DNA of 64,000 nt from Geosiphon pyriformis uo1 (lineage: Eukaryota > Fungi > Glomeromycota): NCBI GenBank assembly GCA_016748015.1, contig JAAOMT010000025.1:23133-87132 (forward strand). Direction: 5' to 3'. The notes under the pieces are model-generated. The model was not told the origin of the DNA. It worked only from the letters and a program-made list of their open reading frames with translations, and did no database searches. Made by a program: the position numbers and the translations under genes. Below, one piece after another: positions 3,501 to 61,100 of this stretch (position 1 is the first letter of the stretch; each line of letters begins with the position of its first letter).

Positions 3501-3651
3501 AAACTTATTTTTTTCTTATGTCTAAATTTTCCAAAGAGCAATTTTTTTGAAAAAAATTTTTTTATTTTGTCTTCCTATTTATATTATTTTCAATATTTTT
3601 CAAGGTAATAATCCTTTTATAATGAATTTAAAGACTGTTTTAAATAGTAAT

Positions 3652-16600: not shown

Positions 16601-16835
16601 TACTAAAACACTTAGCTATCTATTGGACTGTTATTAATAGAAAAAATACTTAAGTCAAAAGTTTGATGTTTATACTAATCATAAAAGATTGACTTCAATC
16701 CAAAAGCAAAAATTTGGAGATGATTACTATGTCAGATAGAAGATAGAACTTTCATCATTTAATTATACAGTACATTAGAAAAAAGGAAAAGAAAATAGAA
16801 ATGTTGACAGTTTATCATAAATAAGACAAATCTAA
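10697..16835 (+). pseudogene. gag-pol: Gypsy-1 Gag-PR-Cys-rich-dUTPase-RT-RNase H polyprotein
   Basis: PIAKLERFTG (capsid), CHYCGKQRHLQINC (zinc knuckle), LILDSGSAS (aspartic protease), DTGFDLRY...RSSL...FGSMG (dUTPase), YLDD (RT), HPVAYA...NVDSLS (RNase H). Ends IRQI*. Confidence 0.9.
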
Positions 16836-16897
16836 AAACATTTTAATCCAAAAATATAACAAAATCTAAACAGTCAAAAACAAAAATATAACAAAAG

Positions 16898-18279
16898 ATA
16901 AATGCACAAAAATATTAACAACTTCAGCACTATATAAATACTCAACAGTTCAAGAAGAAATTATTTCAAAAGGAACAAAACAATATAAAACAACAATCAA
17001 AATATTTTATCAACCATCAAAATATATTTTACCAAAAAAACAAAAGAAATCCAGATCAACCAATCAGAGTAATTACAGAATCAGAAAAAAAGACAATATT
17101 ATTCAACATGCACTCAGATTCAACAGCAGAACATTTTGACAAAGAAGCAACCATAGAAAAAACCAGAAAAAAATACTATTAATTATTAATGTATCCAAAT
17201 ATCATCCAATATGTTCAAAATTGTGATGTTTGTCAGAGAAGAAGAGGAACAAAACCCAATGAACTATTGAGACCAATCAAAGTAAAACAACCATTTAATT
17301 GCATTGGAATTGACTTAGTCAGACCATTAACAATCATCAGCAGAGGCAACAAATATATTGCAGTAGTCATAAATTATCTCACTAAATAGCCAAAAGCAAA
17401 ATTCATTCGAAAAGCAAATGCAGAATCTATTGCTGAATTCATTTATTAAAATTTAATCTGCTAACATAAATGTTCAAAAGAATTGTTATCTGATCAAAGA
17501 ACTCACTTTGTGAATAGAACATTAGCAAAACTAAGTCAAAGATTTGGAATTAAAAGACCATTATCATCATTATAACATTCACAAACAAATGAGTTAGTTG
17601 AAAGATTCAACAGAACATTGTGTGAAGCAATAGCCAAGATCAGCCAAGAAAACCAGGACAAATGGGATCTGTTTATACTATTAGTATTATTTGCTTATCA
17701 GACAATAAAGTAAGACACTACACAAGCAACACTATTTGAATTAGTATATAGTAAAGCAGCAATATTATTAATTGAGATAGAAGTCAATACATATCCAACA
17801 GAACTAATAATTGAAGACAATTTTCAGAAAACATTGCTAAAAAGAACATATGACTTGATAAAAATTCTAGAAAACAAATGGCAAAGAGTAGCTGATAACA
17901 TCCAAAAGTCACAAAAAAAACAAAAAAAAAGACATAATAACCAATAACCAGATAAACCAGTTGAATTCAGAATTGGAGACAAAGTATTATTACATAATCC
18001 CAAAGCAGAAAAACAATAGAGTGAAAATTTGACCTCAAATAGAATGGACCATTTTACATAGAAAAAATTCTAAGAAATAGAGCTTATAAATTAAGATTAA
18101 ACAACAAAATCTTAACCAAAGCAGCACATAAAGATTGACTAAAATTATATCACAATATAGCATCATTATTTGTCAGTAATATTCTACAATTGAAAGTACA
18201 AAAAATAATAGTCCGACCAGATAAGATTTTACAAGATCTAAAACCAATCATTATTATTGACACCAACATGTCAAAATAA
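16898..18279 (+). pseudogene. int: Gypsy-1 integrase (separate ORF)
   Basis: H-x6-H...CDVC zinc domain, IGIDLV...SDQRTHF...QTNELVERFN (DDE core), GPF motif and C-terminal QDLKPIIIID. The start codon has decayed to ATA. Confidence 0.9.
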
Positions 18280-21734: not shown

Positions 21735-23111
21735 TTACATGTTTGATCCAATGATTATGATTGGTTCCAGATCTTATGGAATCTCATCTGGTTGGACTAG
21801 TATTTTCTGTACTCCTAATTATAAAATATTACTAGTGGATGATGATACTATATAATAATATAGTTTCAGTCAATTACCATATGCTGCTTTGGCTAAAATT
21901 TTGTTGTCCCATCTTAATTTATAAGCTTCATTTCCAAGAATTTCTTCTATGTGAAATAGTCCATCCCATTTGGGGTCAAATTTTCTACTCCATTGTTTTT
22001 TTGCTTTGGTATGGTGTAGAAGTACTTTGTTTCCAATCTTGAATTTAACTGGTTTATTTGGTAGTTGGTTATCATAATTTCTTTTTGTTTCTCTTGTGAC
22101 TTCTGAATGTTATCAGCTGCTTTTCACCATTTGTTTTTTAGTGTTTCCATTAAGTCATATGTTCTTCTTAACAATATTTTTTGGAAATTGTCTTCTGTTA
22201 TTGGTTCAGTTGGATATGTGTTAACTTCTTTTTCTACTAGTAATATTGCTGTTCTACTATATACTAATTTAAATAGTGTTGTTTGTGTAATGTCTTGCTT
22301 TATTGTCCAGTAAGCAAATAGTACTGATAGCATAAACAAATCCCATTCATCCTAGTTTTTTTGACTGATCTTGGCAATTGTTTTACACAATGTTCTGTTA
22401 AACCTTTCAACTAACCTATTTGTTTATGGATGGTATGGTGATGATAGTAGTCTTTTTATTTCAAATTTTTGACTTAATTCTGTCAATGTTCTATTTACAA
22501 AGTGTGTTTCTTGATCTAATAGTAGTTTTTTTGGACATCCATGTCAACAGATCAAATTTTGATAAATAAATTTAGTAATGAATTCTGTATCTGTTCTTTG
22601 AATGGCTTTTGCTTTTGGCCATTTAGTGAGATAATCCATGACTACTGCAATATATCTGTTGCTTCTGCTGGTAATGGTTAATGGTTTGATTAAGTCAATT
22701 CCAATGTGATCAAATGATTGTCCCATTTTGATTGGTCTCAATGGTTTACTTGGTTTTGTTTCTTTTCTTCTTTGACAAGCATTACAATTCTGAACATATT
22801 GAATAATATTTGAATACATTAATGGCCAATAGTATCTTTTTCTGGTTTTTTTTATGGTTGCTTCTTTGTGAAAATGTTTTTGTTGTTGGATCTAAATATA
22901 TGTTGAATAGTATTGTCTTTTTCTCTGGCTCTGTGATTACTTTGATTGATTAATCTGAGTTCTTTTTGTTTTTCTAGTAAAGTATATTTTGATAGTTGAT
23001 AAAATATTTTGATTGTTGTTTTATGTTGTTTTGTTTTTTTTGAGATAATTTCTCCTTAAATAATTGGGTATTTATATAATATTAGAGTTGTTGGTATTTT
23101 TGTATATTCAT
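21735..23111 (-). pseudogene. int: Gypsy-2 integrase (separate ORF, ATG at 23111)
   Basis: MNIQKYQQL..., CNAC, IGIDL, WDGLF (GPF region), C-terminal DLEPIIIIGSNM*. Confidence 0.9.
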
Positions 23112-23142
23112 CTTTTGTTATATTTTTTTGGGTTGAAATGTT

Positions 23143-26100
23143 TTAGATTTGTCTTATTTACAACAAACTGTCAGCATTTCTGTTGTCTTTTCTTTTTTTA
23201 TAGTGTACTGTAAATTTATATAATAATAATGCTATTTTCTATCTTGTATGACAATTGTCTCCAAATTCTTGCTTCTGGATAGAAGTCAATCTTTTATGAT
23301 CAGTATACACATCAAACTTTTGGCTCAAGTATTTTTTCCATTTGGTAACAGCCCAATAGATAGCTAAGTGTTCTAGTGCTGAAGTTTCATAATTCTTTTC
23401 GGCTGGACTTAAGCTTCTACTGACATAAGCTACTGGATGTTCTTTTCCATCTGGTTTTTTTTGTGATAGTACTGCTCTTAATGCTTGGTTTGATATATTG
23501 GTGGTAATAATGAATGGTTTGCTGTAATCTGGATACATCAATACTGGAACCTGAATAAGTTTTCTTCTCAGTGTGTCAAATGCTTTTTATTAAGCTTCTG
23601 TTTATTCATACTTTATATTTTTAGTTTGTAAATGATGGAATGGCTGAGCCAGTTTAGAAAAGTCCTTAATAAAACAATAATAATAGCCTGCAAATCCCAA
23701 AAATGCTCTTAGTTCTGTCAAATTGGTTGGTACCAGAAAGTTCTTTACTATTGCAATTTTATCTGAATCTGTTTTGATACCATCTTTGCTTACCACATGT
23801 CCCAAAAACTTGAGTTTTGTTTTGCTAAAGAAGCATTTATTGGCATTTAGTTTCAATCCTGCTCATCTGAGTTTTTCAAATACTTGTTGGAGATGGTGTA
23901 GATGATCATCAAATGTTTTTGAGATTACATTGGTGTTGTTTAAGTATATGACTACTGATTTTCATAGTAGTCCAGTATAGACAATTTCCATGAGTTATTG
24001 AAATATTGCTAGAGTATTCATCAAGCCAAATGGTATTACTTTAAACTCAAAGTTTTCTTCCCGAATTGTAAAAGCCATTTTCTCTTTGTTTTTTGGCTTC
24101 ATGGCTACTTGCCAATAATCACTGTCTAAGTCTAATATCAAGAACTATATCTTTCTACCAAAAACATTGAACAGTTTTTGGATCTTTGGTATTGGATAGC
24201 TATCTTCTTTTGTCACTCCATTTAGTTTCTAGTAATCTACACAAAAATGGATTTTCCCATTCTTCTTATGGACTAGTACCACTGGTGATGACCATGGGCT
24301 CATTGATAGCTGAATTAACCTATTGTCAAACATCTGATTAATTTTTCAACAAATAATCTCATGGCTAGCTAGTGGTATTCTGTATGCTCTCTGTTTAATT
24401 GGCATCACATCTCCAGTTTTTATTTGGTGCTTAATGATGTCAGTTCTGCCAAATTCATTTTCATTGGCAAAGATGTCATTGAAGTTGTTGAGTAACATTT
24501 TGAGTTGCATATGTTGTAGTGGATCTAAGTTTTCCAAGTTTATCTGTTCCAATTGTTCTGGTTGGAGCAGATAACATTCTTCTCATTCGTAGATTGTTTG
24601 TGATGTGATATCTATATATTCACACAGCTGTAAAAAATCTGAAATGGTGTCTGACAGCTGGTTTTCAATTTCAGTGGTTAAATAGCCAATAATGGTTCTT
24701 TCTGGTATTTTGATGATGTTTCCTGTGTTATTGTAAATTAGAATTTTGATGTGCCTGTGATTTTTGGCTGGTATGTGGAGATTAACTAATCTAATCTCTT
24801 CTGATTTGCAAAGTGTTGCTTCTGCCTCAAAAATCTGAATCTGATTCTTCACTTTTTTTTCTATAACTAATATGTACTGGTCATATGGTGGAATGAAAAT
24901 TGATTGACGGATGGAGATAATTTCTCCCTTGTCAATAATTTCTTCCTCTGCCATATTAACTGGTACATCTATTCTACCTGTGGATCCAAATCCCTATATT
25001 TTTTTTGCTGTAATTTCTAATTCTTTCCTGTTTTCTACTGACATTAAATGAGCTATTTTAACCAGAAGTAGAAATATTACCTGTGTTATTTTTTTATTTG
25101 ATTCTATTATATAGGCTTTTTCTGAGTTATTTTGTAACATAGCAATGATATTTCCTATATATCCTGCATCAATTATTTCTCCTCTGATGTTAATTCTCTT
25201 GTTTGCTAAACTACTCCTGAAGATTAGTTGAACTATTATTGTTGTTAGAATTTCTGATGCTATTTTCAGATCAATACAAGTGTGTGAATGTGGTTCCAAT
25301 TTGATGGCATTTTTTTCTGGATATCTTAGATTAAATTCAGCGTTGGTATCATGTGCACGTTCTGGCATAATATCTTCATTGTTATTGCTAAACTATTTTA
25401 GTTTCTGTTCCTTGAAGAGGTCAAAAAGTACAATATATTATTTGGGATTTGAATTGGAGTTTGAATTGTTGTAATTTTTGTTGCCATTTTGAATGGAGCT
25501 AGAACTGTTATTTTCATCATTATCACTGTCAGAGTTTGAATCAAGATTGAAAATTGATTCCAATTTTGACATACAGCTGTTTATTGGTTCATCTTCTTTT
25601 AAGATCATGTAGATTATGTATGATGGTAGATTGTAAATAAAGTTACATTCATTACAATATTGGAAGTTATAAAGGATTAAGCAATGTTGATATAATTGAG
25701 TATTTAACTACTCTAAATGCTGCTTTTGTTCTTCCTTAGTGAATGCTAATTGCTGGTAATGTGCATAGAATTCTTTTGGCTTGTCTTCAATGTTGTTACA
25801 GATGTTGAATGTGAGTATGTATTTAGGTTCAGGCAGTGAAAATGGGTTATTCTTAATTTTTAACAACTCACTGGTAGTGGTGTTTTCTGCTTTTGCACTT
25901 ACTATTCTCCAGATTTTATGTTTGTTGTAAAGATATTCTTCCAACCATTGCAATGCTTTTTTCCAAGCGTTGTTGATTGGAGTTCTTTTGCATACTCAGT
26001 CATTTATCAGGATGGTATACTGGTATGTCTCATCGTATGTTTTTTTACACCCAAGAATGTCATTCCACATTTCTTTGTCAGACAAAATAGTTCCATATGC

Positions 26101-30389: not shown

Positions 30390-32673
30390 ATTTCTTTTTT
30401 TGTTTTCTTAATTTTATAATCATAATTAGAGTAAAGAATAAAAAAGCTGTACTTAATATCTTTCTTGAGATATCTAATAAAATTTTAACCAAAGAAGCTT
30501 TCTCTGTTGTAAAAACAGCTAAACAAAACGTTTTAGAAGTCTTTTTTTTACCCAGTAATTGTAAAAAGCTGTTTTTAGTAGTTGTTGAAGCATTTTTTTT
30601 ATCTTTGGCTGGTTTTTTATTAGTCAAAGTTCTTTTAAAAAAACACACTTAAGTTAGTCTTAGTGTTGCTTCTATTTCAACTAAAAGCCCAAAAGTTTTT
30701 AATAATAAACCAGTTAACAAGCTGGTTTTTCTCTTTATAGCTTTTATATTTAGTGTTACTAACACCATTTCTTCAAAAAATATAATTAAAAAGACCAAAA
30801 ATTCAAACAAGTGAGAGTAGTCACTTGTCTTTATTATTATTACACCAAACTTTTTTGTGGTTTCTAATGAAATCTTAGATGAAATCTTTGTTGCATTATC
30901 TAACATGTCATTCAAGATGGGCCAAAATCAATTACTGGCTGTATTGCCAAATATGGTGTTTTTTAGCAGATTATTACTGGTTTTAGAAACAAAGCAATTA
31001 TTTTTTATAGTATTATTTGTTCTTAAAAATTGGGCTGACTAAATAGAAATTGAATTATTTTCTTTGCTAGTTTCTGGTGCTACTACTAGTAATGTTTGGA
31101 AAACTATTTCTAGTTATTAAAAATTTGCTGGGTGAATAGCCTCTATTCTAATGCCTGGTACAACTTTTAAAATTAAGTTGATTTATATTAGAGATGTTTT
31201 TTAATCTGTACATGGTTTTTTGGATGTAAAATCTGTTTCTAAGAACAATATAAAGCTTTTCTGTATAAAGTTTGCTTTTCAAAACTCCCTAAATATTGTA
31301 TTTTTGGTTAAGCTTACAAGTTCTATTTATTTTGTTTTTCTTAAAATTGCCAAGTTTTTGGTAATTTCTGAGTCTGGTTTTTTTTCTGCTGCTGTTATAT
31401 TGTGTAATATAATATTAGGTGTGTTTACTGTTAATATTAAGACAGTTTTTGGTGTTTTTGGTAAAGTTCTCTGTGTTGTATTAAAACCTATTAGTGTTTG
31501 GCAATATATAATTGTTTACTTTAAAAAATTAAGTATTGCTGTATTTGTTTTTAGTCATTAATTAGTTTTGGTGAGTAAAAATAATGTTAGGATCTTTTTT
31601 TTAGTGAATCAAAGTGAAATTATTATATCTTGTAATAGGTTTAAGGCCAAGTAAATCAATCTTTTTTTTGGCTATACTGTTTTTGAAACCAGTAATATAA
31701 TTTTTTAATTCAGTTATTGTACATGTTTTATTTTTTATTCTCCTGATTCTGGTTATTATTCCTAGTTTGTTCTGCTTATGTTTAAATCTTAGGTCAATTT
31801 AGATACTGCTATTATTAAAACTGGTACACTAAAGAAGTATTATATCTGATAGAAAACTCCTGGTTGTTAATGCTGTTTTAGATGTCAAAAAATGAGCCAT
31901 TTAATTATAAACTATAAAATTTTTCCACTTTTTTCTTTCAAAACTTCCAAGATATTTGCTCTATATTTTGTGAATATGAAGTTTTATGTTAAGATGTTTG
32001 CTCTTTTAAGCTTTTCTGAATTCTTTTCATTAGTAACTTTTATTTTTTTTTAAGATTAAAGATAATTTTTTGATTTTGTCTTGGCTGATGTCTTTAAAAT
32101 CTGATATAACCAAGTTGTTAACTTTAGTTAAGTTAATTGTTAAGCCTATTAAATTTTTGGTTATTATTTTGAACAGTTTATTAAAGATAATTTGGTTTTA
32201 AGCAATATTTTTAGTCTTAAAATTAATAAATTTATAATTTATTTGAGTTATTTTAACAAAGTTGTTGGTAAGTTAGGAAGAAAAATAATTTTACTAAAAA
32301 AAAAGTGTTATATAGAGGATGTTAACATGTTTGGTGACTTGAATTATCTAATTGGTATTAATGATAATATATTTTCTAGTTTGATGTTTCTTTGAACACA
32401 TAACCCTAATAATGATAAGATTAATCTCTTAAAAACAACTGAGTAATAGATTGAATTAGTTTCTTATAGTATTTAATTATTTAATATAATTTAAAGAATA
32501 TTAGCTTTAAGTAAGTTTACTTTTATTGTAGCAATATAATATAGTTTAAACTGGTTTAAATAGCTAATTATATATAGAAAATGTGTGAACTATATTTAGC
32601 ACTAGAATATTTAGTTTGTTTCTAATTCTTAAATAGTGATTGGACCATTCTTATTAAATCTTCATAAAAAAAA
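30390..32673 (+). mobile_element. ORF1-only non-autonomous non-LTR element (HAL1-like), copy 1
   Basis: One decayed ORF (about 30422-32539) resembling LINE ORF1 (FQSVHGFLDVK, IWQYIIVYF, CFRCQKMSHL knuckle, coiled coil). It is followed directly by the LINE-type 3' UTR and poly-A, with no endonuclease or RT. Confidence 0.8.
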
Positions 32674-33238
32674 TAATAATTATTAATTATACAATTAATA
32701 AAAAAATATAATGACTTTTTTATTTATAACTTTTTAAAAAAAAATTCTATTTTTTATTAGTAAAAATATAAACAAAATTATTCTAAAAAACTTTTTGTTT
32801 CTTTAATTTTATGATCATGACCAGAGCAAAAAGTAAAAAAGCTATATCTGATATTTTTTCTAAAATATCTAATAAAATTTCAACCAGAAAAGTTTTTTCT
32901 GTTGTAAAAACAACTAAACAAAATATTTAAGAGGTCTTTCTGTTACTTAGTAATTGTAAAAAGCTGTCTTTAATAGCTGCTAAAGCATTTTTTTTATCTT
33001 TGACTGGTTTTTTACCAGTTAAAATTCTTTCAAAAAAACACACTTGGATTAATCTCAGTATTGTTTCCACTTCAACTAAGAGCCCAAAAGTTTTTAATAA
33101 CAAACTAGTTAACAATGTTACCAGACGAAATTAGAGATATCATTTAGCATAAAACTATCTTATAATTCCTATCATTAATTAGCATATATTATCGTTCAAA
33201 TTATCACTTATTACATTAGCAAAAAAAAAAAAAAAAAA

Positions 33239-34197
33239 NNNNNNNNNNNNNNNNNNNNNNNNNNNNNNNNNNNNNNNNNNNNNNNNNNNNNNNNNNNNNN
33301 NNNNNNNNNNNNNNNNNNNNNNNNNNNNNNNNNNNNNNNNNNNNNNNNNNNNNNNNNNNNNNNNNNNNNNNNNNNNNNNNNNNNNNNNNNNNNNNNNNNN
33401 NNNNNNNNNNNNNNNNNNNNNNNNNNNNNNNNNNNNNNNNNNNNNNNNNNNNNNNNNNNNNNNNNNNNNNNNNNNNNNNNNNNNNNNNNNNNNNNNNNNN
33501 NNNNNNNNNNNNNNNNNNNNNNNNNNNNNNNNNNNNNNNNNNNNNNNNNNNNNNNNNNNNNNNNNNNNNNNNNNNNNNNNNNNNNNNNNNNNNNNNNNNN
33601 NNNNNNNNNNNNNNNNNNNNNNNNNNNNNNNNNNNNNNNNNNNNNNNNNNNNNNNNNNNNNNNNNNNNNNNNNNNNNNNNNNNNNNNNNNNNNNNNNNNN
33701 NNNNNNNNNNNNNNNNNNNNNNNNNNNNNNNNNNNNNNNNNNNNNNNNNNNNNNNNNNNNNNNNNNNNNNNNNNNNNNNNNNNNNNNNNNNNNNNNNNNN
33801 NNNNNNNNNNNNNNNNNNNNNNNNNNNNNNNNNNNNNNNNNNNNNNNNNNNNNNNNNNNNNNNNNNNNNNNNNNNNNNNNNNNNNNNNNNNNNNNNNNNN
33901 NNNNNNNNNNNNNNNNNNNNNNNNNNNNNNNNNNNNNNNNNNNNNNNNNNNNNNNNNNNNNNNNNNNNNNNNNNNNNNNNNNNNNNNNNNNNNNNNNNNN
34001 NNNNNNNNNNNNNNNNNNNNNNNNNNNNNNNNNNNNNNNNNNNNNNNNNNNNNNNNNNNNNNNNNNNNNNNNNNNNNNNNNNNNNNNNNNNNNNNNNNNN
34101 NNNNNNNNNNNNNNNNNNNNNNNNNNNNNNNNNNNNNNNNNNNNNNNNNNNNNNNNNNNNNNNNNNNNNNNNNNNNNNNNNNNNNNNNNNNNNNNNN
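33239..34197. other. Assembly gap (N run) hiding most of the Gypsy-3 5' LTR, PBS and gag start
   Basis: The Ns begin inside the LTR poly-A tract, which is seen intact at about 41611-41642 in the 3' LTR. Confidence 0.99.
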
Positions 34198-34199
34198 AT

Positions 34200-37100
34200 T
34201 TTACATCACTCAGAAGTCCTACCAGACAACAAGAACCCCTTCAAACTAGTTCCAATCTTCTTGATTTTCTAGCTGAAAATCAAAGTGAACACTTTGAGAC
34301 AGCAGCAAACAAAGAAAACAACTCTGAAATAACTGAAAAAGAATCAATAGACAGTGAAAAGGAAGAAGACAAAATGACAACATACATTGCAAAAATCTCT
34401 GAATTTAATGGAGAAGATATTGAGACCAGTCCCCAAGAATGGCTTGACCAAGTTACTAAAGCTGGAGATGCAAATGAATGGAATGCTGCCAGAATGTTAA
34501 GAACAATTTCCTACTTTTTCAAAGGAACAGCAGGAGAATGGTTTGAAAACTTGGCTGCCTCATTCAATGATTGGAACGCTTTCAAAGCAGCCTTCCTTGA
34601 ACAGTTCACCAACAATAACACCTCCATTACTCTTCGCAATTGTTTTCGAAATATCAAACAAGAACCCTCCGAATCCATTATAACTTATATTGGGAAATTC
34701 AACAAACTTCTCAGACGAATTCGCCAACTCGAGACAAATGATTATTATTCCGATGCTCAAATCTTAGATCAATTTATTGCTGGTCTAAAAGATAAACTAA
34801 TTAAAAAGGTTTACCTACATGTGCCAGAAGATTTAAACTCTGCTATACAGCATGCGAAAAGATACGAAATGGCCATAAAAGAGGCCAACTGCACAAAACT
34901 TATAAATTTGGCAATTGGAGAAACCAGCTCAGCAGCTGAGGAAAAAATTGACCAACTCACTAAGAAGGTTGAAAACTATTTCACCAATCAACAACAACAG
35001 CAACCCCAAAGATATCAACCACCCCAAAGACGAAATCAAAATAACTTTGCACCACTTTCCAATAACCAGCCTTAGAATTGCCATTACTGTGGAATCTCTG
35101 GCCACTGGAAAAGAAATTGCAGAAAGCTACAACGAGACCAACAAAATAGGAGTAATCAATGTTACCCTCTACCACAGCAATCTTATTATCAACTGCCACC
35201 ACCAGCTTACTATCCATTAAGACTCCAATACCAAAATAACTATTATCAGCCCACCCCACAGCCAATCCCACAGCAATACCAACAACTGCTCACACAACAT
35301 TATCAAGTACCTGCTCGAAAACTGCTTACACAAAATTAATTCACACCACAAAACTGATACCAAGCAAACAACAATAGAATCAGTTCAAACAACCAATTGG
35401 TTCCCCAAAATACCACTCAACCAAGACCCAACCACTACCACACTCAATCCAGTTATTTAACAATGCCAGAAGAACAGGATTTTCACTATACTGCACTCTC
35501 AGAAGGTAGAGCTGTAGCACAACAACAAAACCCTTCCTATACTCCCACCACAATTTCACCAGCCAGAATCGCTGAAAATGCTAACCTTTCAGATATATTC
35601 CCTTTTGAGTTCGAAGCAAATGAGTCACCATTTCTGCTTAGCAATGCAGCTGCCAATAAACAAAAAGCAATCACGGCCATGTACACTGAAACTGAAGTCG
35701 AAGGAAAAACAATTCGCTTGATTCTAGACAGTGGATCCACCAGAAGCATTATCACCTACCAGTTAATGCAACAGTTGAAAAGAAATATTGACTGACCAGC
35801 TCAAACAGTAATCGTCACTGCCAATGGCATGAAAAAGACCCCAGTAGGAGAAATTGACAATTTTTTATTCACTCTTAATGGAATCATCATTCCAGTCAAA
35901 GTTCTTGTAATGGACGCACCCCAATACCAAGCTCTCATCGGAAATGATTGGCTTCAAAAAGCCAATGCTAATCTGAATTGGGAAACACAAGAGTTAACAA
36001 TCTCTTACCAAGGACAACATGCCCGAGTACCTGCCATTTGTGGTACATTCAACAAACACTCTGAAAAAGCCCCAGCTTTTGAATTCGAACCAGAAGAGAA
36101 AAAACCCCTCATTAAAACATTCATGGCTCTTGGATCAACGTCCAACTGGGCCAATGAAACAGAACAAGAACATTTTACCCCACACTCTGAACCCGAAACC
36201 TTTGGATGGAATATATCTTACTCAAAACCCGAACCAAGGAAACAACACCCCTATATTTCCCTTAAATATAAGGACTGCCACAAGAAACTATCATTAATGG
36301 GAGCCTGTATTTCACCTGAAAAAGAATATGAAAATCATACTTGTTATTACTGCAAGGCTTGCCACAGAAAATGATGGGGCCATCTAATAAAAAGGAGCAG
36401 AAAATGGGACAACACCCCTTGTTTGACTTGTGGAGATATGCTACTGGAAGAATGTAATTAGATTGATGTAGCCATAAGAGGAGGAGTCTACAATCAGACC
36501 TGCCAATATGCTTTATCAATTTCAGAAAAAGTAAAAAGAGGAACACCCTTTAATACAGCATACAACAGTGCTCTCAACAAACTTTATCACTACTCCCATG
36601 ATGCCAAAATGATTTTTGACCTAGCAATGGCATTAATTAATGAAGCTACCAAAGAAGATGTTTGCCAAATGAAGGAAGCAAAATACATTGAATACATCAT
36701 GGAATTAGCTGGATTTGATTACGAAGACAAAGTAGAAGTCTACCACCAAATCGCAAGTCACACCTACCCAATCCAAAAAGCTCAAATTCAATGATTAGAG
36801 CAAATGAACATTAGGCTATGTGAAGAATGTATTATGCCTTGTAATGAACAGTGGTGTCCTGAATGTTATGCTCTTAGCATTCTCTTGCCCAGTGAAAATG
36901 ATGAATACAAAATTAAATTTGGAGAACTTGAAGTAACAGAAGAAATTGAGACAACACCCATCTATCTCATCGAAAATCAGCCTGCTTTACAACTCAAATA
37001 TTTCAACAACAATGGACAAGGAATAAAACCAGAAAAAGCCCACGAGATCGATGCTGGATATGATCTAAGATATCCAGGAAAAGATACTCTTACTCTCAAA

Positions 37101-39260
37101 CCCAAATCTCTCACAAAAATCAACCTCAAAATTGCTCTCAAAATCCCACCAGGAGCAATGGTTCAAATTGCTTTTCGATCATCCTTGGCAAGCAAAGGAA
37201 TCAATATTAGAGGAGGAATCATCGATGTTGAATACACAGAAAACATCACAGTTATGTTACAAAATGAAACTGATAAACCTTTCAAAATTGGATATGCTGA
37301 AAAAATTGCACAAGCTATCTATCTACCCTTAATCAACATTTCGAGTTTACAATTAGTTAATCAAAAAGAACAGTTGGGAAAAAGTGAAAAAGGAACACAA
37401 GGTTTTGGTTCAACTGGACGTTTCACAGTTTCAGTAAACATAGCTCTCAATAAACAGAAAGAATCTCACCAGATTTTACAACTTCCACAACCAATTACCA
37501 TTTCACTCTTTGAAGAACACCCTGAAATTTACATTTGTGAAAAGCCAACAACCACACAACAAATTTTTGAATCAAAAGAACAAATCTGCTTGAAACATAA
37601 TATCTCGATCCCAAACATTTATATTCCAGTAGGAACAAAGAAAGTCCGAGTTACTTTTTACAATCCCAACAATTATCTCATAGTTTTATTAAATAACTTA
37701 GAAATTGAAATTATTCACAGTAACATATTTTAACAAGAATTATCCCAAACAGTCCCCAATTTTTCTGAAATTATTGAACATTCACTACTAAAAATCAATC
37801 CAAATCCCAGCTCCGAAAACTACTATGTTGTCATGGAAAAACTATCTTGAATCAACATGGGACAACTTGAACCACAACAACAGACCCAGCTTAAAGAACT
37901 AATTGCAAAATTTGCTGATATCTTCGCTGAAAACAACAATGACTTAAGAAGAACTGATTTGGTCCAACACCAAATTTATACAGGAGATGCCAAACCAAGA
38001 AGACAACAAGCATATCGAGTTGCTCCAAAAAGCCACCAATTTATTCGAGAAGAAGTACAACGGATGCTTAACAATGGACTTATCCAACCATCAATGAGTT
38101 CATGGGTTTTACCAGTGGTCTTAGTTAAAAAGAAGAATGGAAAGATACGATTTTGTGTTGATTATCGACAACTCAACAGTGTTATCATTGGGGATGCTTA
38201 CTCTCTTCCACGAATTGATGACATGTTAGATGTCCTTGGAAAATCTAAATACTTTTCAACATTAGACCTAGAAAGCGGATACTAGCAAGTTGCCATGGAT
38301 CCCAAGGACCGCCCCAAAACAGCATTCACAACACAAAGAGGAAACTACAAATTCAATATAATGCCCTTTGGATTATGCAATGCGCCAGCAACATTCCAAA
38401 GACTCATAGATGTTGTATATGCTGGACTCCTTTGGAAATCAGTAGTTGTCTATCTTGATGACACTGATGTTTATTCCCCATCTTTCGGACTTCATTTAAT
38501 TCACCTGCGAGAAGTTTTTCAATGATTACGTAAAGCAGGATTAAAACTAAACATTGAAAAATGCCATTTTGGAAAAACAAGTTTGGCCTTTCTTGGTCAC
38601 ATAGTTAGTGAAGAAGAAGTCAAACCAGATCCAGGAAAAATCAGTGCTGTTAAAAACTTCAAAGTTCCACGAAATACTACAGAACTAAGAGGATTCATAG
38701 GATTAGCATCTTACTATCGGAAGTTTATCAAAGAATTCTCGGAAATTGCAAAACTCCTTAACCAGCTCACCACCAAAAACATGGAATACAAATGAACTAC
38801 CGAACACCAAAAAGTTTTTGAAATTCTCAAGGAAAAACTGACAACAGCCCCAATTCTTGCCTACTCGGATTTCAGCAACCGATTTTGACTAGCTACAGAT
38901 GCTTCATATACTGCCTTTGGTGCCATCTTATCACAACTAGATGACAATGGAAATGAGTGAGTAATTGCTTATGCTAGCAGAACATTAAAACCAGCTGAGA
39001 AAAACTACCCTGTCATAGAACTAGAAACAGCAGCCATAATTTGGGCCTTACACTACTTCAACCTTTATCTTAGGCCTAAAGAATTCAATATTATCACTGA
39101 TAATATTGGACTCAAATGGCTTTAGAACAAAAATGCTCAGCTGAATGCAAAACAAATCTGATGGACAGGATTTCTAGCAAATTATTGATACATAGTACAT
39201 CACAAACCAGGAAAACTTCACACCAATGTTGACTGTCTCTCCAGAATGAGACAAGATTAG
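34200..39260 (+). pseudogene. gag-pol: Gypsy-3 single-frame Gag-PR-Cys-rich-dUTPase-RT-RNase H polyprotein
   Basis: ORF pieces at 34374, 35397, 35829, 36609, 36804, 37857, 38295 and 38583 are all in one frame, broken only by point stops. Motifs: CHYCGISGHWKRNC, LILDSGST, YLDD, TDAS...ELET...NVDCLSR; ends MRQD*. Confidence 0.95.
36993..37420 (+). CDS. dut: Trimeric dUTPase domain within the Gypsy-3 polyprotein
   Basis: All five dUTPase motifs in canonical order: AGYDL, RSSLA, GGIIDVEY, IAQ, KGTQGFGSTG. Equivalent domains at about 14580-15010(+), 24970-25400(-) and 62075-62466(-). Confidence 0.95.
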
Positions 39261-39309
39261 AAAACAAAAACCAACACTTAACTTAACCAACCAAAAGAGC
39301 CAACAAACA

Positions 39310-40695
39310 ATGAATTCAGAAAACTACAACAATCTTAAACAATATTTGGAAACATTAACAATCCCAACAGATTGGTCTCCAGATAAAAAACATCAACTAC
39401 AACAACAAGCCAAACAATATTTTCTACACAACAACATTATTTATCATCAAAATTTCAAAAACCCAGACAAACTACTCACACTAATACAAGAACAGGAAAA
39501 AGAAACCATATTATACAACATGCACTCAGATCCTTTATTAGCACACTTCGGAAAAGATAGCACCACTCAAAGAACACTAGAATACTACTTTTGGCCTTGA
39601 ATGAAGAAAGACATTCACGAATATGTCAAATCTTGTAATAGTTGTCAAAGAAGAGAAGAAACACACCTTACTGAACCATTAAATCCAATCAAAGTTGGAC
39701 AACCCTTTGACCGAGTTGGTATCAATTTAGTCAAACCATTATCTATCACCATTCAAGGAAACCATTATATTACAGTAGTTGTAGACTATCTTACTAAATG
39801 ACCTGAAGCCAGAGCCATTTAACAAGCAGATGCGAAATCAGTAGCAAATTTCATCTACAAAGACATTATTTGTAGACATGGATGTCCAATTGAACTTTTA
39901 TCCGACCAGAGAACACATTTTGTGAACAACCTAATACAAGAAATTTGCAAACAATTCAATGTCAAAAGACCTCTGTCTTTGCCCTACCATCCACAAACAA
40001 ACGGACTTGTGGAACATTTTAACAGAACATTGTGTGAGTCATTAGCCAAAGTTTCAACCAATTTTGAGCAAGAATGGGATATCTTTATTCCATTAGTGTT
40101 ACTAGCATATAGAACACTAAAACAAGATACCACAAAACACATACTATTTGATTTAACTTATGGAAGAACAGCAATGCTACCAATTAAGTTCACAGTAGAA
40201 ACATACCCAGCACAACCAATCAATAAAAACAATTTTCAGAAAACACTTCAACGAAGAGCTTACACTCTGCTTAGCATGTTGGAAGGAAAACAACGAATAG
40301 CAGCCATCCATATTGAAAACTTCCAAGCGCGACAAAAAAAACGGCATGATGACAAATTGTCTCCAGTCACCAATAAATTTAAAATCGGAAACAAAGTTCT
40401 CTTACACAGAACTAAAGCTGAAAAACAATGGAGTGGGAAATTTGAAAATAAATGGGATAGATCATTCTTTATCCATGAAGTTTTAGACAACGGATCATAC
40501 AAATTAAGACTTGATGACAAAATTCTAGCAAAAGTTGCACATGGAGATCGTTTGAAACACTATAATTCCAAAAACAATCCTGAACTATTAATTTCACAAA
40601 TTGGTATACATTCCCCTTTAATTAATTCCGAAGACATTTCCCAAAATTTAGAACCAGTAGTTGTTATTGAACAGTCTCCCAACTTAAACACTTAA
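39310..40695 (+). pseudogene. int: Gypsy-3 integrase (separate ORF with its own ATG)
   Basis: MNSENYNNLKQYL..., HSDPLLAH...CNSC, DDE core, WDRSF/GSYKL region and QNLEPVVVIE tail. All pieces lie in one frame, different from the polyprotein frame. Confidence 0.95.
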
Positions 40696-40775
40696 TTTAA
40701 ATTTATTATTATAGTTATTTTCTTATAATTTAGAAACAATCTCACAAAAACAAAACAAAAATAACATAAAAACCC

Positions 40776-41495
40776 ATGCACCAAAAAATAATTTTCTTTT
40801 ATTTCAAATTGCTTATAATAACTATTCCTCAAAACATTCAACAATTATCCCAAAAACTAATGTTAGCTTTAAAAACAATACCCGAATTATCCATTACTGT
40901 TACTGGAAACCATATTAATTATACCCAAACAGAAGTAGTTACAAATTTAGCCCCAAATTCACGAAAATATCACCCATATAAAAAAAACACAAGAAGTTAT
41001 ACTGGAATTCACCTGCCAGAACTTTTAAAGCTTGCTTTAAGAGAAAATCTAATGCTCACTCCGATTAGTATTCTACCAAATGCTACAATTCAACAAAGAC
41101 TTCAACTGTGTCTCAATGAGGAAAACACTGAATATCCTCCAATCTATAGATATTTTTACATTGGAAAAACACTCTACAAATGGAAACTAGAACTTACAAC
41201 AGCAAACCTCACAAAAAAAGCTATTCAGAAACAACTCCACAACGAATTCAAGACAACAGCTGGATCAACAAACAGTCGCTACAGGCTCAAAGCTGCTTTT
41301 AGACTTTATGACCTATTCTACACCTGTGAAAATGTACTACAAAACCCAATTTTTCAACCTTTGAAGATTCAATACATTGGAAAGCTCACAGAACTGAAAT
41401 TTTAACAATTTTCAGACCAAATTTCTTCAATAATTTTGGATTATTATCTGGAAATAACAAACAATACTTGGATTTTGACAGAGCTCAGTCTTGAG
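40776..41495 (+). CDS. Gypsy-3 ORF3, about 210-240 aa, probably helical, unknown function (one internal stop at 41403)
   Basis: 209-aa open ORF. TIPQNIQQLSQKL aligns with family A MEI[TP]DxIxxxxQxLFQ, and RLYDLF...PLKIQYIGKLTELKF aligns with TMYQL...ITINQIRKITxxQF. Confidence 0.75.
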
Positions 41496-41505
41496 GAGGA
41501 GGTTA

Positions 41506-41607
41506 TGTTACCAGACAAAATTAGAGATATCATTTAGCATGAAACTATCTTATAATTCCTATCATTAATTAGCATATATTATCATTCAAATTATCACTTA
41601 TTACATT

Positions 41608-41644
<37 letters not shown>

Positions 41645-42511
41645 TTCGAAATTATCATTTAATTAATAACCCAAATTGTATACAACACAAATGTAATCTA
41701 ATTGCAATAATCAATCATGCAATACCCCAAACTATGTAACATTCAAAAGTTTGCTGAAATTTATAGAAATTTGCCGAAATAATTGATAGTTTACTGAAAT
41801 ATCTAATAGTTCGTAGAAATAACTTGTAGTTTGCCGAAATGTATTTTTAATTCAGTGAAATTGTAGAAAATAGCAAAGTTCAAGTTCATAGAATAGTGTT
41901 ATGACAAGTTGTATAAAAGAAGAGCTTTTCTCTTCAAGAAGATGTATCTTACTTTAAATTTATCACTTAGAACCATTCCTACACATACAAAAAGAAATAA
42001 ATATCAAATAATTCGAAAAATCAAATTCTTTAATTATTGCACTTGGAAAATCCTCCAAACCCAACTAAAGTTTTGAAATTGATTAGCTACCAATTTCAAT
42101 AATCTGTTAGTGACTCCAGGCCTGGATTGAAAACGTTTCCCTTGACAAAATTTCATTTCTTTTACATCTTTTTATTTTTTTTCTTTTATTTTCTTACTAT
42201 AATCATTAGGGTAGCCTACAGACAAGATTTTTGTAGAAGAGTTGACTTTCACAGCAAAGTAACTATACATTTTAGTGAGCTTCCAGACAAGCAATTCCTG
42301 GGAAAGAGTTGACATTTACTACAACGTAACTACATAAAGTAACTGGCACGGAATTGGTCATTCTACTTATAAGCCTAGCAATTCAAATTATAGGAGATAA
42401 TTTGAAGATAAATTCAGTTACTGGAGGTTCAACCACATCCAGAAAACGTGAATTCACAGCAAACAAGCACCGACAACATTTAAGAAAAGAGACCAAAAAC
42501 CTTCAGTAACA
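41506..42511 (+). repeat. Gypsy-3 3' LTR
   Basis: TGTTAC...GTAACA. The first about 120 nt match 33116-33238. Contains a poly-A tract, an approximately 20-bp periodic TAGTTTGCCGAAAT array (about 41748-41865) and TATAAAA at about 41912. Confidence 0.95.
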
Positions 42512-58127: not shown

Positions 58128-61100
58128 TTATCTTCTCCTTTTTAATATTGAGCTCTGTCAAAATCTTCATTTTGAATTAATTCTAATACTTTTTTTCAAG
58201 TATTGTTTGTTCGACTCTGTTTCTTATGTCTTCTACTTGTGTATTGTTCATTCTTTTTCATTGGTTAATGGTTATGGTTTCTATGTTAGAGTGTAACAGT
58301 ATTTTTGGATAGTTCCGAAATTTGTTGTGTAGTTGGTACATTGTTTTAACATGTAATGTTGAATTTGTTTTCTTTCCAATAAATTCTTCAATTTGTTGTA
58401 TTATGTCTTGGTTGAATATTCTCTTGGATTTGTCAATATACAACTCCTGAATATTCAACTTTTGATCTAACTGGTAATAGCAATATGATATTGGAAGTTG
58501 TTCTGTCCATTGCTTCCAATTTTCTTTTGTAAGCTCTTCTGTTGGTGCCATAACAGGTATTTTCCCAAAAGTGTTTTTCACTTTTTTTATTAAGTTATTT
58601 GTCCAGTTTTTATTGTTCTTTAGTAATCACTGATATGATGTATTTTTTGTTTTTCTTTTGGTGTTTTGATAGCAAATTGTTTGATTGTTAACAATAATTT
58701 CTATGTTTAAAGATTGTTGACTTAAGGCTTGGAATAATTGTTGAGCTATGATGTGAATATGATCTGGTATTTCCATTTTTTTTGGTTGCTTTTGTTATGT
58801 ATATTGTGTCTTTTATATGCTCTTTTATTGTTCAATTTTATGTGTTTGGTCCAATGATTATGATTGGTTTCAGATCTTGTGGAATTTTATCTGGTTGTAC
58901 TAGTATTTGTTGTATTCACAATTGTGGAATGTTATTGGTAGATGATAATGCTATTTGGTGATATGGTTTTAGTCAATCACCATGTGTTGCTTTGGCTAAA
59001 ATTTTATTGTTCTATCTTAATTTATAAGCTCCATTTCCAAGAATTTCTTCTATGTGAAATGGTCTGTTTCATTTGATGTCAAATTTTCCATTCTATTGTT
59101 TTTCTGCTTTGGTACGATGTAATAGTACTTTGTCTCCAATCTTGAATTCAATTGGTTTATCTAGTAGTTGGTTATTGTGTCATTCTTTTTGCTTTTCTTG
59201 TGATTTTTGTATGTTGTTAGCTGCTTTTTATTGTCTGTTTTTCAAAGTTTCTATTAAGTCATATGTTCTTCTCAACAATGTTTCCTGAAAATTGTTTTCA
59301 ATTATTGGTTCTGTTGAATAAGTGGTGACTTCTATCTCAACTGGTAATGTTGTTGTTCTACCGTATACTAATTCAAATGGTGTTGTTTGTATGCTGTCTT
59401 GCTTCATTGTCTGATAAGCAAATAATACTGATGGTATGAACAAATCCCATTCATCCTGGTTTTTTTGACTAATCTTGGCAATTGCTTCACACAGTGTTTT
59501 ATTGAATCTTTTTATTAATCCATTGGTTTGTGGATAGTATAGTGATAACAGTGGTCTTTTGATTCCGAATCTTTGACTTAATTCTGTTAATGTTTTGTTC
59601 ACAAAGTAAGTTCTTTGATCTAATAGTAGTTCTTTTAGACATCCATGTTGACAAATCAAATTTTGATAAACAAATTTGGCAACGGATTTTGCATTTGTTC
59701 TTTGAATTGTTTTTGCTTCTGGCCATTTAATGAGATAGTCCATGACTACTGCAATATATCTGTTGCCTCTGCTGATAATTGTTAATGGTTCAACTAAGTC
59801 AATTCCAATTCAATTAAATGGTTGTCTCACTTTGATTGGTTTTAATGGTTCATTGGGTTTTGTTCCTTCTTTTCTCTGACAAGCATCACAATTTTGAACA
59901 TATTGAATGATGTTTGGATACATTAATGGCCAATAGTATTTTTTTCTAGTTCTTTCTATGGTTGCTTCTTTATGAAAATGTCCTGTTGTTGGATCTGAGT
60001 GCATGTTGAATAATATTGTTTCTTTCTCTGGTTCTGTGATTACTTTGATTGATTAATCTGAGTTCTTTCTGTTTTTCTAGTAAAGTATATTTTGATGATT
60101 GATAAAATATTTTGATTGTTGTTTTATGCTGTTTTGTTCTTTTTGAGATAATTTCTCCTTGAACAATTGAGTATTTATATAATGTTGAAGTTGTTGGTAT
60201 TTTTGTGTATTCATCTTTTGTTGTATTTTTGGGTTGAAATGTTTTTAAATTTGTCTTATTTGCGACAATTTCTTAGCATTTCTATTGTCTTTTTCTTTTT
60301 TATAATGTACTATATAATTGAATGATGAAAGTTCTATTTTTCATCTAGTATGGCAATCATCTCCGAATTCTTGTTTCTGGATTGAAATCAATCCCTTGTG
60401 ATTAGTATACACATCAAACTTTTGACTCAAGCATTCCTTCCACTTGATGACAGCCCAATAGATAGCTAAGTGCTCTAATGCTGAAGTACCATAGTTCTTT
60501 TCAGCTGGACTTAAACTTCTACTGGTATAAGCTACTGGATGTTTTCTTCTATTCAGTTCTTTCTGTAATAGTACTGCTCCCAATGCTTGGACAGATGCAT
60601 CAGTAGTGATGATAAATAGTTTGCTGTGATTTGGATACATCAATACTGGAGCTTGAATAAGCTTTTTTTTTAATATGTCAAAAGCTTCTTGTTGAGTTTT
60701 TGTCTATTCATACTTCACATTCTTTGTTTGGAGTTGGTGTAGTGGTTGAGCTATTTTGGAAAAGTCCTTAATAAAGTGGCAGTAATATCCAGCAAATCCC
60801 AAAAATGCTCTTAATTCCATGATATTATTTGGTACTAGAAAGTTCTTAACAATTTTAATTTTGTCTGAATCTGTTTTGATTCCATTTTTGCTTATGATAT
60901 GTTCCAAAAACTTGAATTCAGTTTTTCTAAAGAAACACTTGGTTGCATTTAGTTTCAATCCAGCTCTTCTTAGTCTCTTAAACACTTGTTAAAGATGATA
61001 TAGATGATCATTAAATGTTTTCAAGAACACATTGGTATTATCTAAGTATACAATTACTGATTTTCATAGTAATTCTATATATACAATTTCTATGAGCCAT

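Follow-up and report, generated by a model that had tools for sequence, protein, structure and literature searches.

The window analysed here covers 64,000 nt of the Geosiphon pyriformis uo1 contig JAAOMT010000025.1 (positions 23,133-87,132). It contains the Ty3/Gypsy element Gypsy-3, whose features are listed below in window coordinates.

33116..33238, + strand: first 123 nt of the 5′ LTR, starting TGTTAC, 97.6% identical to the start of the 3′ LTR (computed over the comparable 123-124 nt only)
33239..34197, no strand: assembly gap (N), into which about 883 nt of the 5′ LTR, the PBS and the leader fall
34374..39260, + strand: decayed ORF1 (Gag-PR-dUTPase-RT-RNase H) in a single frame with 17 internal stops (frame map, translation, Pfam)
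about 35079-35120, + strand: CCHC, an ORF1 landmark
35727-35735, + strand: DSG, an ORF1 landmark
37029-37418, + strand: dUTPase, an ORF1 landmark
38451-38462, + strand: YLDD, an ORF1 landmark
about 38889-39245, + strand: RNase H, an ORF1 landmark
39261..39309, + strand: RH-INT spacer of 49 nt, A/C-rich (29 A, 14 C, 2 G, 4 T), without ATG
39310..40695, + strand: decayed integrase cistron with its own ATG, in frame +1 relative to ORF1 (Pfam Integrase_H2C2, rve_3)
40696..40775, + strand: INT-ORF3 spacer of 80 nt, without ATG (from sequence)
40776..41405, + strand: ORF3, 209 aa, no Pfam domain
41493..41502, + strand: polypurine tract GAGGAGGAGG, 3 nt 5′ of the 3′ LTR
41506..42511, + strand: 3′ LTR, 1006 nt, TG...CA (LTR comparison)

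Gypsy-3 is a single insertion, as its LTR ends (TGTTAC...GTAACA), the 4-bp target duplication ACAA at 33112-33115 and 42512-42515 and a paralogous empty site at 30717-30720 demonstrate. Only 123 of the 1006 nt of the 5′ LTR precede the assembly gap, and the sequence behind it does not match the LTR; already at the gap edge the gag frame is open. Since the gap spans the 5′ LTR and leader, the true start of gag is uncertain and continuity across the gap cannot be demonstrated. The primer-binding region also falls inside the gap. The RH-INT junction lies 5 kb away and is unaffected. A further Geosiphon copy (locus L089) is collinear with Gypsy-3 34380-41504 in one 7.2-kb alignment.

Homology to gag, PR, dUTPase, RT and RNase H (RH) lies throughout in one frame (position mod 3 = 0), and this frame ends in DCLSRMRQD followed by a TAG at 39258-39260. 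The integrase (INT) ATG stands in the context acaaacaATGa. The cistron carries an HHCC zinc finger, a DDE core and a GPY/F region, is interrupted at 39598, 39799 and 39820, and ends with a TAA at 40693; its product is 70-83% identical to Geosiphon proteins and 44-51% identical to intact stand-alone integrases. Pfam matches on the stop-free pieces of Gypsy-3 gave the order Gag-PR-RT-RNase H-INT. A chromodomain was found neither by Pfam on the INT pieces nor in the precomputed Pfam lists of the intact stand-alone integrases, and the aligned integrases end about 40 aa past GPY/F.

Three copies of a second family, family A, have a comparable junction in the window.

16833..16900, + strand: family A copy 1 junction, TAA, 62-nt spacer, ATA replacing ATG (sequence)
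23109..23145, - strand: family A copy 2 junction, TAA (23145-43), 31-nt spacer, ATG (sequence)
60212..60247, - strand: family A partial copy junction, TAA (60247-45), 30-nt spacer, ATG (sequence)

Re-reading of the sequence placed the stop, spacer and ATG of Gypsy-3 and family A exactly where the first-pass annotation had put them. Readable Geosiphon junctions come from four families, namely Gypsy-3 (window and L089), L088, L087 and family A (three window copies and one in L087). In every such copy the RH stop lies exactly 4 codons past LSR/LSQ, a constancy greater than chance would give, and this position is kept between families whose nucleotide identity is about 75% or lower. The Geosiphon spacers are A/C-rich and very poor in G. 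Those of the window families measure 29-62 nt with no stop/start overlap, and the L089 spacer equals that of Gypsy-3 in length and phase. Within family A, the 30- and 31-nt spacers differ by the length of an A-run and the 62-nt spacer by an insertion of about 32 nt, so that the differing phases are weak evidence within the window alone.

None of the four window copies is intact, and the longest ORF anywhere in the 64 kb is 309 aa. The extra in-frame stops of Gypsy-3 (17 from gag to RNase H, 3 in INT) replace codons for W, R or Q in relatives. Five internal stops are common to Gypsy-3 and L089; therefore a shared stop is by itself no proof of function. As all window copies are decayed, the window is insufficient to prove a split pol. 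The abundance of stops, and the five that the two Gypsy-3 copies share, would suit an artefact of decay, in which the stop after RNase H is a degenerative mutation inherited by dead copies of a live ancestor with a fused pol. The constant stop position across the four Geosiphon families argues against such an origin, as do the intact elements described below, and we regard it as barely credible.

The same architecture was found in intact elements elsewhere. R. irregularis has many copies with a Gag-PR-RT-RH ORF of 1444-1447 aa and a separate INT ORF of 430 aa, and in R. irregularis and soil-metagenome elements together an open ORF1 of 1431-1627 aa is followed by an open INT ORF of 405-441 aa (L001 from R. 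irregularis, L003, L004, L007, L064 and others). Among the matches listed, all 57 polyproteins at least 54% identical to R. irregularis ORF1 lack rve and H2C2, so that no close relative has INT domains in its polyprotein. Fused RH-INT polyproteins appear only at 52% identity or less, where most matches carry INT domains. Intact copies with a continuous RH-INT frame, which the first-pass annotation had named as contradicting a split, were sought and none was found among close relatives. Its proposal that INT is missing from the polyprotein and has a cistron of its own, with a third ORF besides, is thus upheld, by the intact relatives and not by the window copies.

The INT start, previously noted as shared by Gypsy-3 and family A, proved to be conserved far more widely. 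It falls exactly at the Met aligned with 39310 in 83 of 150 cluster representatives (5 more start within 3 residues), ATG occupies INT residue 1 in 71 of 74 metagenome loci, and M1 is invariant, like Y6, in an alignment of 10 integrases (10/10). The comparison of RT and INT that had been suggested showed that the distances between RT-RH sequences rise and fall with those between integrases (Mantel r 0.87, 0/2000 permutations); in the INT tree the split elements form a monophyletic group. Gypsy-3 and family A are almost certainly decayed members of a large Ty3/Gypsy clade with a separate INT cistron; taken jointly with this clade architecture, both the RH stop (39258) and the INT ATG (39310) are with equally high confidence ancestral and not products of decay. 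The named members of the clade are Glomeromycotina (Geosiphon, Rhizophagus), and many further ones come from soil metagenomes. Their ORF1 reads Gag-PR-[dUTPase or NUDIX]-RT-RNase H and stops a few to about 300 codons past the RNase H motif ADALSR, and the INT start follows the consensus M-x4-Y-x2-L-x2-Y-L.

At about 38 RH/INT junctions across the relatives, stop and start either overlap as ATGA or are separated by 19-206 nt, in a few cases by more. All three phases occur, and extra in-frame stops are frequent (two in L001, seven in L006, two in L088); the L003 spacer has several stops in every frame. The ATGA overlap is present in about 10 diverged loci and an 11-nt overlap in 3 more, and both kinds recur at INT/ORF3 junctions. 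Within 80 nt on the 5′ side of the ATGA overlaps, RNAalifold predicted no conserved base pairing, an observation that counts against reinitiation. The phases, the extra stops and the ATGA overlaps together rule out readthrough, frameshifting and splicing-to-fuse as the route from RH to INT. The first-pass annotation had excluded readthrough and a fixed frameshift and had concluded from the phases that the spacer is non-coding: the exclusion is confirmed by the relatives (all phases, stops, overlaps), and the phases of the window, with its A-run and insertion, are weak evidence by themselves. Two details could still suggest recoding of the RH stop into an RH-INT fusion, by readthrough or, in Gypsy-3, by a +1 shift at GAU-UAG-A. 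In both copies of the Gypsy-3 family the INT frame is open from 9 nt upstream of the RH stop to the end of the spacer, and the family A partial copy at 60 kb has RH and INT in frame across a single TAA. However, an internal fusion point would not be expected to keep a Met at one aligned position in nearly all relatives, and given the intact relatives we consider recoding most improbable.

We then asked which features of the spacers bear on how INT is expressed. The 21 non-redundant RH-INT spacers contain 10 ATGs, 6 of which belong to one locus, against 31.9 after shuffling (0/5000 shuffles as low). Likewise, 3 ATGs were observed in 15 INT-ORF3 spacers against 19.6 expected (0/5000 shuffles). 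ATG-free spacers are equally expected in the leader of a subgenomic mRNA, which weighs against reinitiation, as does the occurrence of spacers of at least 200 nt that contain ATGs (L046, L041, L043). At six junctions the INT start has a purine at -3 in 5 cases and G at +4 in 4, and both predominate in the other listed contexts too.

ATGA overlaps at both RH/INT and INT/ORF3, ATG-depleted spacers and good AUG contexts favour post-termination reinitiation on the genomic RNA. We tentatively prefer this reading as a whole, mechanism included, while rating it somewhat short of probable. Full-length RNA would be the template for INT and later ORF3, each read by ribosomes coming directly from termination at the ORF before it. 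In one subclade stop and start would be coupled directly at the ATGA overlap; in the other members, the window families among them, 40S subunits would scan onward across a short spacer with little structure and no AUG until they reach the next AUG, placed in good context. Coupled termination/reinitiation functions in a fungal host (CHV1 UAAUG; PMC2699510), and 40S subunits left after termination can move on to an AUG of good context further downstream by scanning (PMC5972666). In the related pararetroviruses, reinitiation after long ORFs is independent of spacing and gives polycistronic translation (PMC5902531). On the other hand, reinitiation after ORFs of 1300-1800 codons is normally very inefficient in eukaryotes without a cis element (TURBS) or trans factor (TAV) (PMC5972666, PMC5902531). 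Reinitiation would yield little INT relative to Gag and RT. The integrase would have to enter the particle or cDNA as a free protein, recruited perhaps through its conserved N-terminal extension or by RNA binding; this entry step is pure conjecture.

A covarying bulged hairpin lies directly 5′ of the INT AUG in one subclade (L003-type), outside which the window families fall. It was detected in 28 of 92 loci with strong covariation, and it would suit scanning no better than an element for internal entry or protein binding. Cap-independent internal ribosome entry at the RH-INT spacer would use this hairpin or, in the window families, an A-rich unstructured tract; the G-poor A/C-rich Geosiphon spacers and the covarying structure adjoining the AUG are consistent with it. 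Nevertheless, no spacer sequence or structure common to the whole clade was found, and L001, an element with many intact copies and the sister of the hairpin-bearing L007, lacks the hairpin. Moreover, there is no spacer where the cistrons overlap at ATGA, and direct entry does not require ATG depletion. Internal entry is therefore doubtful.

The main rival to reinitiation is a capped subgenomic mRNA for INT together with ORF3, arising from an internal promoter in the RNase H/ORF1 tail or by splicing of a 5′ leader to a site just upstream of the INT AUG. Foamy viruses splice a leader in this way for Pol and retroviruses for Env. No reinitiation after a very long ORF would be needed, and the AUG-free spacers would suit a 5′ leader. 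The hairpin subclade has an invariant CAGC 3-20 nt upstream of the AUG, which also fits. Three JGI contigs of 1.85-2.3 kb start 158-282 nt 5′ of INT and span INT and ORF3, and one of them terminates in an A-run 17 nt past ORF3. Yet these contigs are collinear with the genomic ORF1 end and could be RNA or DNA, no spliced form was seen, and a sister contig has an A-rich stretch 3′ of ORF3. The 120-nt spacer of L001 contains no G and therefore no AG acceptor, and a 5-kb intron would be unusual in fungi. A subgenomic mRNA also leaves the conserved ATGA overlaps at two junction types unexplained. We consider it a serious but rather unlikely source of INT.

We compared the clade with known systems. 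Like canonical Ty3/Gypsy elements (Metaviridae) of the non-chromoviral GPY/F type, its members have TG...CA LTRs, a 4-bp duplication, a polypurine tract, a CCHC Gag, a DSG protease, the order RT-RNase H-INT, and HHCC, DDE and GPY/F. In canonical elements, however, INT is the protease-released C-terminus of Pol, whereas here a stop follows RNase H, INT has its own AUG and a conserved ORF3 follows. Chromoviruses carry a chromodomain at the INT C-terminus, and none was detected here. Dictyostelium Skipper, with a separate pro ORF, and plant Ogre, with an intron inside pol, are likewise examples of a gag-pol region split among more than two expression units. Skipper is split before or after PR, and Ogre between PR and RT with the break spliced out; here the split is at RH/INT, and the spacers are too short for introns or lack GT/AG. 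We found no published description of Gypsy elements with a separate INT gene.

Foamy viruses (Spumaretrovirinae) and hepadnaviruses make the replication enzyme apart from Gag or core, and it reaches the particle by binding genomic RNA. A replication protein translated independently of the capsid polyprotein thus needs its own route into the particle. There the entire Pol is separate, in the split clade only INT; foamy Pol comes from a spliced mRNA, and no spliced form was seen for the split clade. The hairpin beside the INT AUG might, speculatively, be a packaging element.

With coupled termination-reinitiation, as in the hypovirus CHV1 (UAAUG; PMC2699510), the clade shares a stop/start overlap (ATGA, conserved at RH/INT in one subclade and recurring at INT/ORF3), a good-context downstream AUG and AUG-free spacers. 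Caliciviruses and influenza B use AUGA/UAAUG with TURBS, and non-LTR retrotransposons have stop-start overlaps (PMC5972666, PMC5902531). Most split-clade members, however, including those of the window, have spacers of 19-200 nt and no overlap, and no TURBS-like conserved structure was predicted upstream of the overlaps. Caulimoviridae share an INT-less Gag-PR-RT-RH polyprotein and consecutive long ORFs with short gaps or overlaps on one RNA (PMC5902531). They have no integrase or LTRs, encode a movement protein and form an episomal circle, whereas the clade has LTRs, a target duplication and a functional-looking INT gene but no movement protein. TAV-mediated reinitiation in Caulimoviridae is independent of ORF spacing, and no TAV-like factor is known outside that family (PMC5902531). 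The resemblance is only an analogy.

Whatever the mechanism, INT must be made and reach the particle or cDNA by a route not described for Gypsy-type elements. The most far-reaching reading, which we judge unlikely, is an ancient and still active Glomeromycotina Ty3/Gypsy clade that is tricistronic on one genomic RNA, with a cis or trans device new to LTR retrotransposons and with INT joining the replication complex as a free protein. Reinitiation after an ORF of 1300-1800 codons would then yield integrase and subsequently ORF3, and ORF3 or the bulged hairpin would be candidates for the device. If true, the clade would show in living form the kind of polycistronic organisation, with INT uncoupled, that could have given rise to pararetroviruses.

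ORF3 is a conserved gene family downstream of INT across the relatives, with no detectable similarity to TAV or any Pfam family. By sequence comparison, the ORF3 of Gypsy-3 is probably a diverged member of this family (hhalign probability 26%, E 7e-4), with which it has the motifs YFY[IL]G and K[AG]AxR[IL]YxLF in common.

Gypsy-3 is a Ty3/Gypsy element inserted in the second unit of a direct repeat (units ~2.4 kb, ~78–82% alike), in an AT-rich window from Geosiphon pyriformis. The first repeat unit keeps the empty site, AGTTAACAAGCTG at 30713-30724, in which the uninterrupted paralogous target sequence itself is 30717-20.

Gypsy-3 and its surroundings in the window
30397-33115 and 42512 to ~44900: direct repeat
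33116-42511: Gypsy-3, LTR ends TGTTAC...GTAACA, 4-bp target duplication ACAA
33239-34197: the only N run of the window
37029-37418: dUTPase domain between protease (PR) and RT (Pfam E 1.7e-21)
39258-39260: TAG closing the ORF1 frame
39310: ATG of the integrase cistron (INT), +1 frame
40776-41405: ORF3
41493-41502: polypurine tract

The N run takes out ~883 nt of the 5′ LTR together with the primer-binding region and the leader. The gag start and continuity across this gap are not establishable, and the junction between RNase H (RH) and INT lies 5 kb downstream of it. The pieces of gag, PR, dUTPase and RT supported by Pfam all share one frame, in which the RNase H motifs follow. This ORF1 frame closes after ...DCLSRMRQD, and an A/C-rich spacer of 49 nt separates it from INT. 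In one alignment, window 34380-41504 runs collinear with L089, another copy from Geosiphon. In further Geosiphon junctions ORF1 stops at the same codon position, with spacers of 49 nt (L089), 57 nt (L088), 29 nt (L087) and 33 nt (a copy of family A, the second family of the window). L089 also contains a fifth copy, family A-like, whose junction was too decayed for reading. The three family A junctions in the window have exactly the coordinates and sequence given in the first-pass annotation, which had proposed a tricistronic lineage with a separate INT gene.

All copies in the window are dead, and its longest ORF is 309 aa. Decayed copies were translated with X at stop positions. Gypsy-3 carries 17 extra stops in the frame of ORF1 and another 3 in that of INT, at codons that read W, R or Q in relatives. 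Comparison of Gypsy-3 (34380-41504) with L089 (2049-9212) resulted in 904 transitions and 232 transversions, and at several sites TGA in one copy is CAA in the other, the pattern that CpG deamination of CGA, on one strand or the other, would give. Five internal stops are common to the two copies, reflecting either descent from an already defective copy or parallel mutation at hotspots. In family A, the spacers of 30 and 31 nt differ by a change in A-run length, the 62-nt spacer contains an insertion, and RH and INT of the 30-nt copy share a frame. Since the copies are dead, some other stops too are common to more than one copy, and the phase differences come from A-run indels, the window alone cannot separate an ancestral stop from shared decay, and we rejected it as stand-alone evidence.

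Relatives decide between the two. Many database proteins matching Gypsy-3 INT are stand-alone integrases of 405–441 aa, including a 42-member cluster from R. irregularis. All begin with M-[DEN]-x3-Y-x2-[LIF]-x2-[YF]-[LI], for which the Gypsy-3 counterpart is MNSENYNNLKQYL. An exhaustive search with the spacer plus the INT N-terminus, translated in the INT frame, yielded 162 cluster representatives. Of the best 150, 83 have their first residue exactly at the Met that aligns to 39310, and another 5 start no more than 3 residues away. In only about nine does the match fall inside a long protein, at 23–36% identity. Two stand-alone integrases of this fungal clade, P0048 and P0113, are labelled by NCBI as 'Bacillus sp.' MAG proteins, probably from contaminated bins.

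Relatives' loci
L001 (R. irregularis): ORF1 of 1453 aa ending in TAA, 120-nt spacer with a second in-frame stop, INT of 430 aa, ORF3 at 9313-9714
L002: TGA ending RT-RH overlaps the INT ATG (ATGA), ORF3 at 8074-8751
L003: ORF1 of 1611 aa with long tail at 4745-5473, 70-nt spacer, hairpin at 5500-5546, INT of 417 aa
L004: ORF1 of 1431 aa with long tail at 4330-4827, 85-nt spacer, INT of 424 aa, ORF3 at 6294-6794
L006: spacer of 201 nt containing six more in-frame stops
L007: long ORF1 tail at 4937-5716
L026: long ORF1 tail at 3494-4438
L064: long ORF1 tail at 5081-5908
L007-L012, L015-L022, L024-L029, L036, L037, L044, L064, L076: hairpin in the same place as in L003

The separation by stop, spacer and ATG was thus borne out by intact relatives, and it is kept in another member of the Glomeromycotina, R. 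irregularis, whose L001 has an intact ORF1 and a separate INT. R. irregularis assemblies hold many intact, near-identical copies with a 430-aa INT and an ORF1 of 1444–1447 aa, indicating that the family was recently active in this layout. A continuous RH-INT frame was sought with the R. irregularis ORF1 as query and length limits wide enough for a fused form. Among the matches listed at 54% identity or more, all 57 contain gag, PR, RT and RNase H without rve or H2C2; none is fused. Matches at or below 52% identity, from animals, plants and a choanoflagellate, have INT domains in most cases.

Across 25 elements, distances in RT-RH track those in INT (Mantel r 0.87), and both trees recover the same subgroups. 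In the INT tree the split clade stands apart from five fused outgroups. Rooting the RT tree with fused outgroups gave no resolution, as the outgroup gene models include several chimeras and a single decayed copy forms a long branch.

A metagenome scan with the INT alignment found 80 soil loci, 74 of them usable, and in 71 of the 74 an ATG stands exactly at INT residue 1. About 38 distinct RH-INT junctions were readable. In a subclade with the RH end KPGRIHSNVDALSR, the INT ATG shares bases with the preceding TGA (ATGA overlap) in ~10 diverged loci, the overlap is 11 nt in three and the distance is +19 nt in one. The remaining spacers are mostly 19–206 nt, with a few up to ~450 nt and one apparent 827 nt, and fall in all three phases. 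The first-pass argument from three phases is carried by the relatives' junctions more than by the window phases, which come from A-run changes and an insertion. Readthrough, a fixed frameshift and an intron fusing RH to INT were rejected, because the junctions of intact relatives vary in phase and carry overlaps and extra in-frame stops. Spacers of -4, 19, 24 and 29 nt are also too short for an intron, and the Gypsy-3 ORF1 end is without GT. Recoding or an artefact is accordingly highly improbable. Open ORF1 in the surveyed loci reaches 1627 aa. Past the ADALSR motif of RNase H, the ORF1 tail is 166–315 aa in several subclades and 4 aa in the window families; a Pfam search of the long C-terminal tails gave no match.

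ORF3 is a conserved family of 130–260 aa, homologous across loci and located 3′ of INT in the loci listed and in others. The window ORF3 shares its two motifs weakly, and a Pfam search of ORF3 gave no domain match. INT and ORF3 are -11 to 176 nt apart, the intervals contain very few ATGs, and the ATGA and 11-nt overlaps are seen again here.

ATG is rare in both spacers. In 21 non-redundant RH-INT spacers (2125 nt) it occurs 10 times, six of them in one locus, compared with 31.9 in shuffles (0/5000 as low); the counts for TGA and AGT are 40 and 37. INT-ORF3 spacers contain 3 ATGs, compared with 19.6 (0/5000). Around the INT AUG, position -3 is usually a purine and position +4 usually G. The ATG depletion in both spacers, the recurrent overlaps and the AUG context fit linear ribosome movement, and we tentatively favour translation of INT by post-termination reinitiation, in which ribosomes would pass from each stop codon to the next AUG, from ORF1 to INT to ORF3. 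CHV1 is a documented case of stop-restart in a fungal host (PMC2699510), and in caliciviruses and CaMV post-termination scanning leads to a well-placed AUG, with spacing-independent reinitiation after long ORFs (PMC5972666, PMC5902531). Our preference stays below even confidence because reinitiation after very long ORFs normally requires a special element or factor (PMC5972666, PMC5902531) and no conserved structure was predicted upstream of the ATGA overlaps.

ATG-free spacers would equally suit the leader of a subgenomic mRNA, the strongest rival and a less likely source of INT than reinitiation. L091, a JGI contig with INT and ORF3 of the R. irregularis-like family, terminates (1835-1851) in 14 A residues, 17 nt past ORF3. 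This run could be an A-rich piece of the genome or an internal transcript's poly(A) tail; in the sister contig L092 the sequence 3′ of ORF3 includes an A-rich stretch. JGI contigs starting shortly upstream of INT are collinear with the genome and may be RNA- or DNA-derived, and a search for spliced INT transcripts among JGI contigs of the R. irregularis family gave only collinear ones. Internal ribosome entry at the spacer is a still more doubtful route than a subgenomic RNA.

A conserved RNA-like element of ~41 nt precedes the INT AUG by 3–20 nt in 28 of 92 loci, one per locus. This predicted hairpin has two helices, the outer of 5 bp and the inner of 6 bp, together with a purine-rich bulge of 11 nt that does not vary (GAAAGCGAAAG) and a loop of 8 nt (CAnnGUGA). 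Pairing in the inner helix holds for 100% of 114 cells and includes 26 double changes (0/500 shuffles), and 7 of 11 pairs show compensatory changes. The element was not found in the window, the Geosiphon loci or R. irregularis L001. It was considered as a central polypurine tract and as a known RNA family; both readings were rejected, as it occurs once per locus, only before INT, and has no Rfam match.

Of the structural features of Ty3/Gypsy readable here, these elements depart in one textbook feature: INT does not form the C-terminal part of Pol. They are neither chromoviruses nor caulimovirids. The nearest functional analogies are stop-restart systems, the polycistronic translation of caulimovirids, and foamy viruses and hepadnaviruses, which produce an enzyme separately from the capsid protein. 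In the fungal and AM-fungal TE literature covered, no LTR retrotransposon is described as having INT in a cistron of its own; an earlier mention, as in Repbase notes, is possible. Judged from sequence, the split layout is supported clade-wide. Current models of retroelement assembly take it that INT enters the particle as part of Gag-Pol. The clade described here has INT uncoupled from Pol, which shows that this premise is not universal, and it offers a natural system for how free INT finds its cDNA and how three long ORFs of one retroelement are expressed via the eukaryotic ribosome or a subgenomic RNA. Annotation pipelines assuming RT-RH-INT in one ORF will misclassify such elements and label INT genes as host 'DDE-type integrase/transposase', as is already so in R. 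irregularis.

Several minor observations accompany these results. A Helitron-like/PIF1 gene adjoins the R. irregularis element (L001:11653-15839). In L002, a 16.7-kb ENA contig, the element is repeated head to tail every 8328 nt; its Gag-PR and RT-RH overlap in a -1 arrangement, and a lone in-frame RT stop lies at 5502-5504, in both repeats. Some relatives (P0367, P0370, P0387) have a NUDIX domain in the polyprotein instead of the dUTPase, an alternation that suggests repeated capture of nucleotide-pool-cleaning enzymes.
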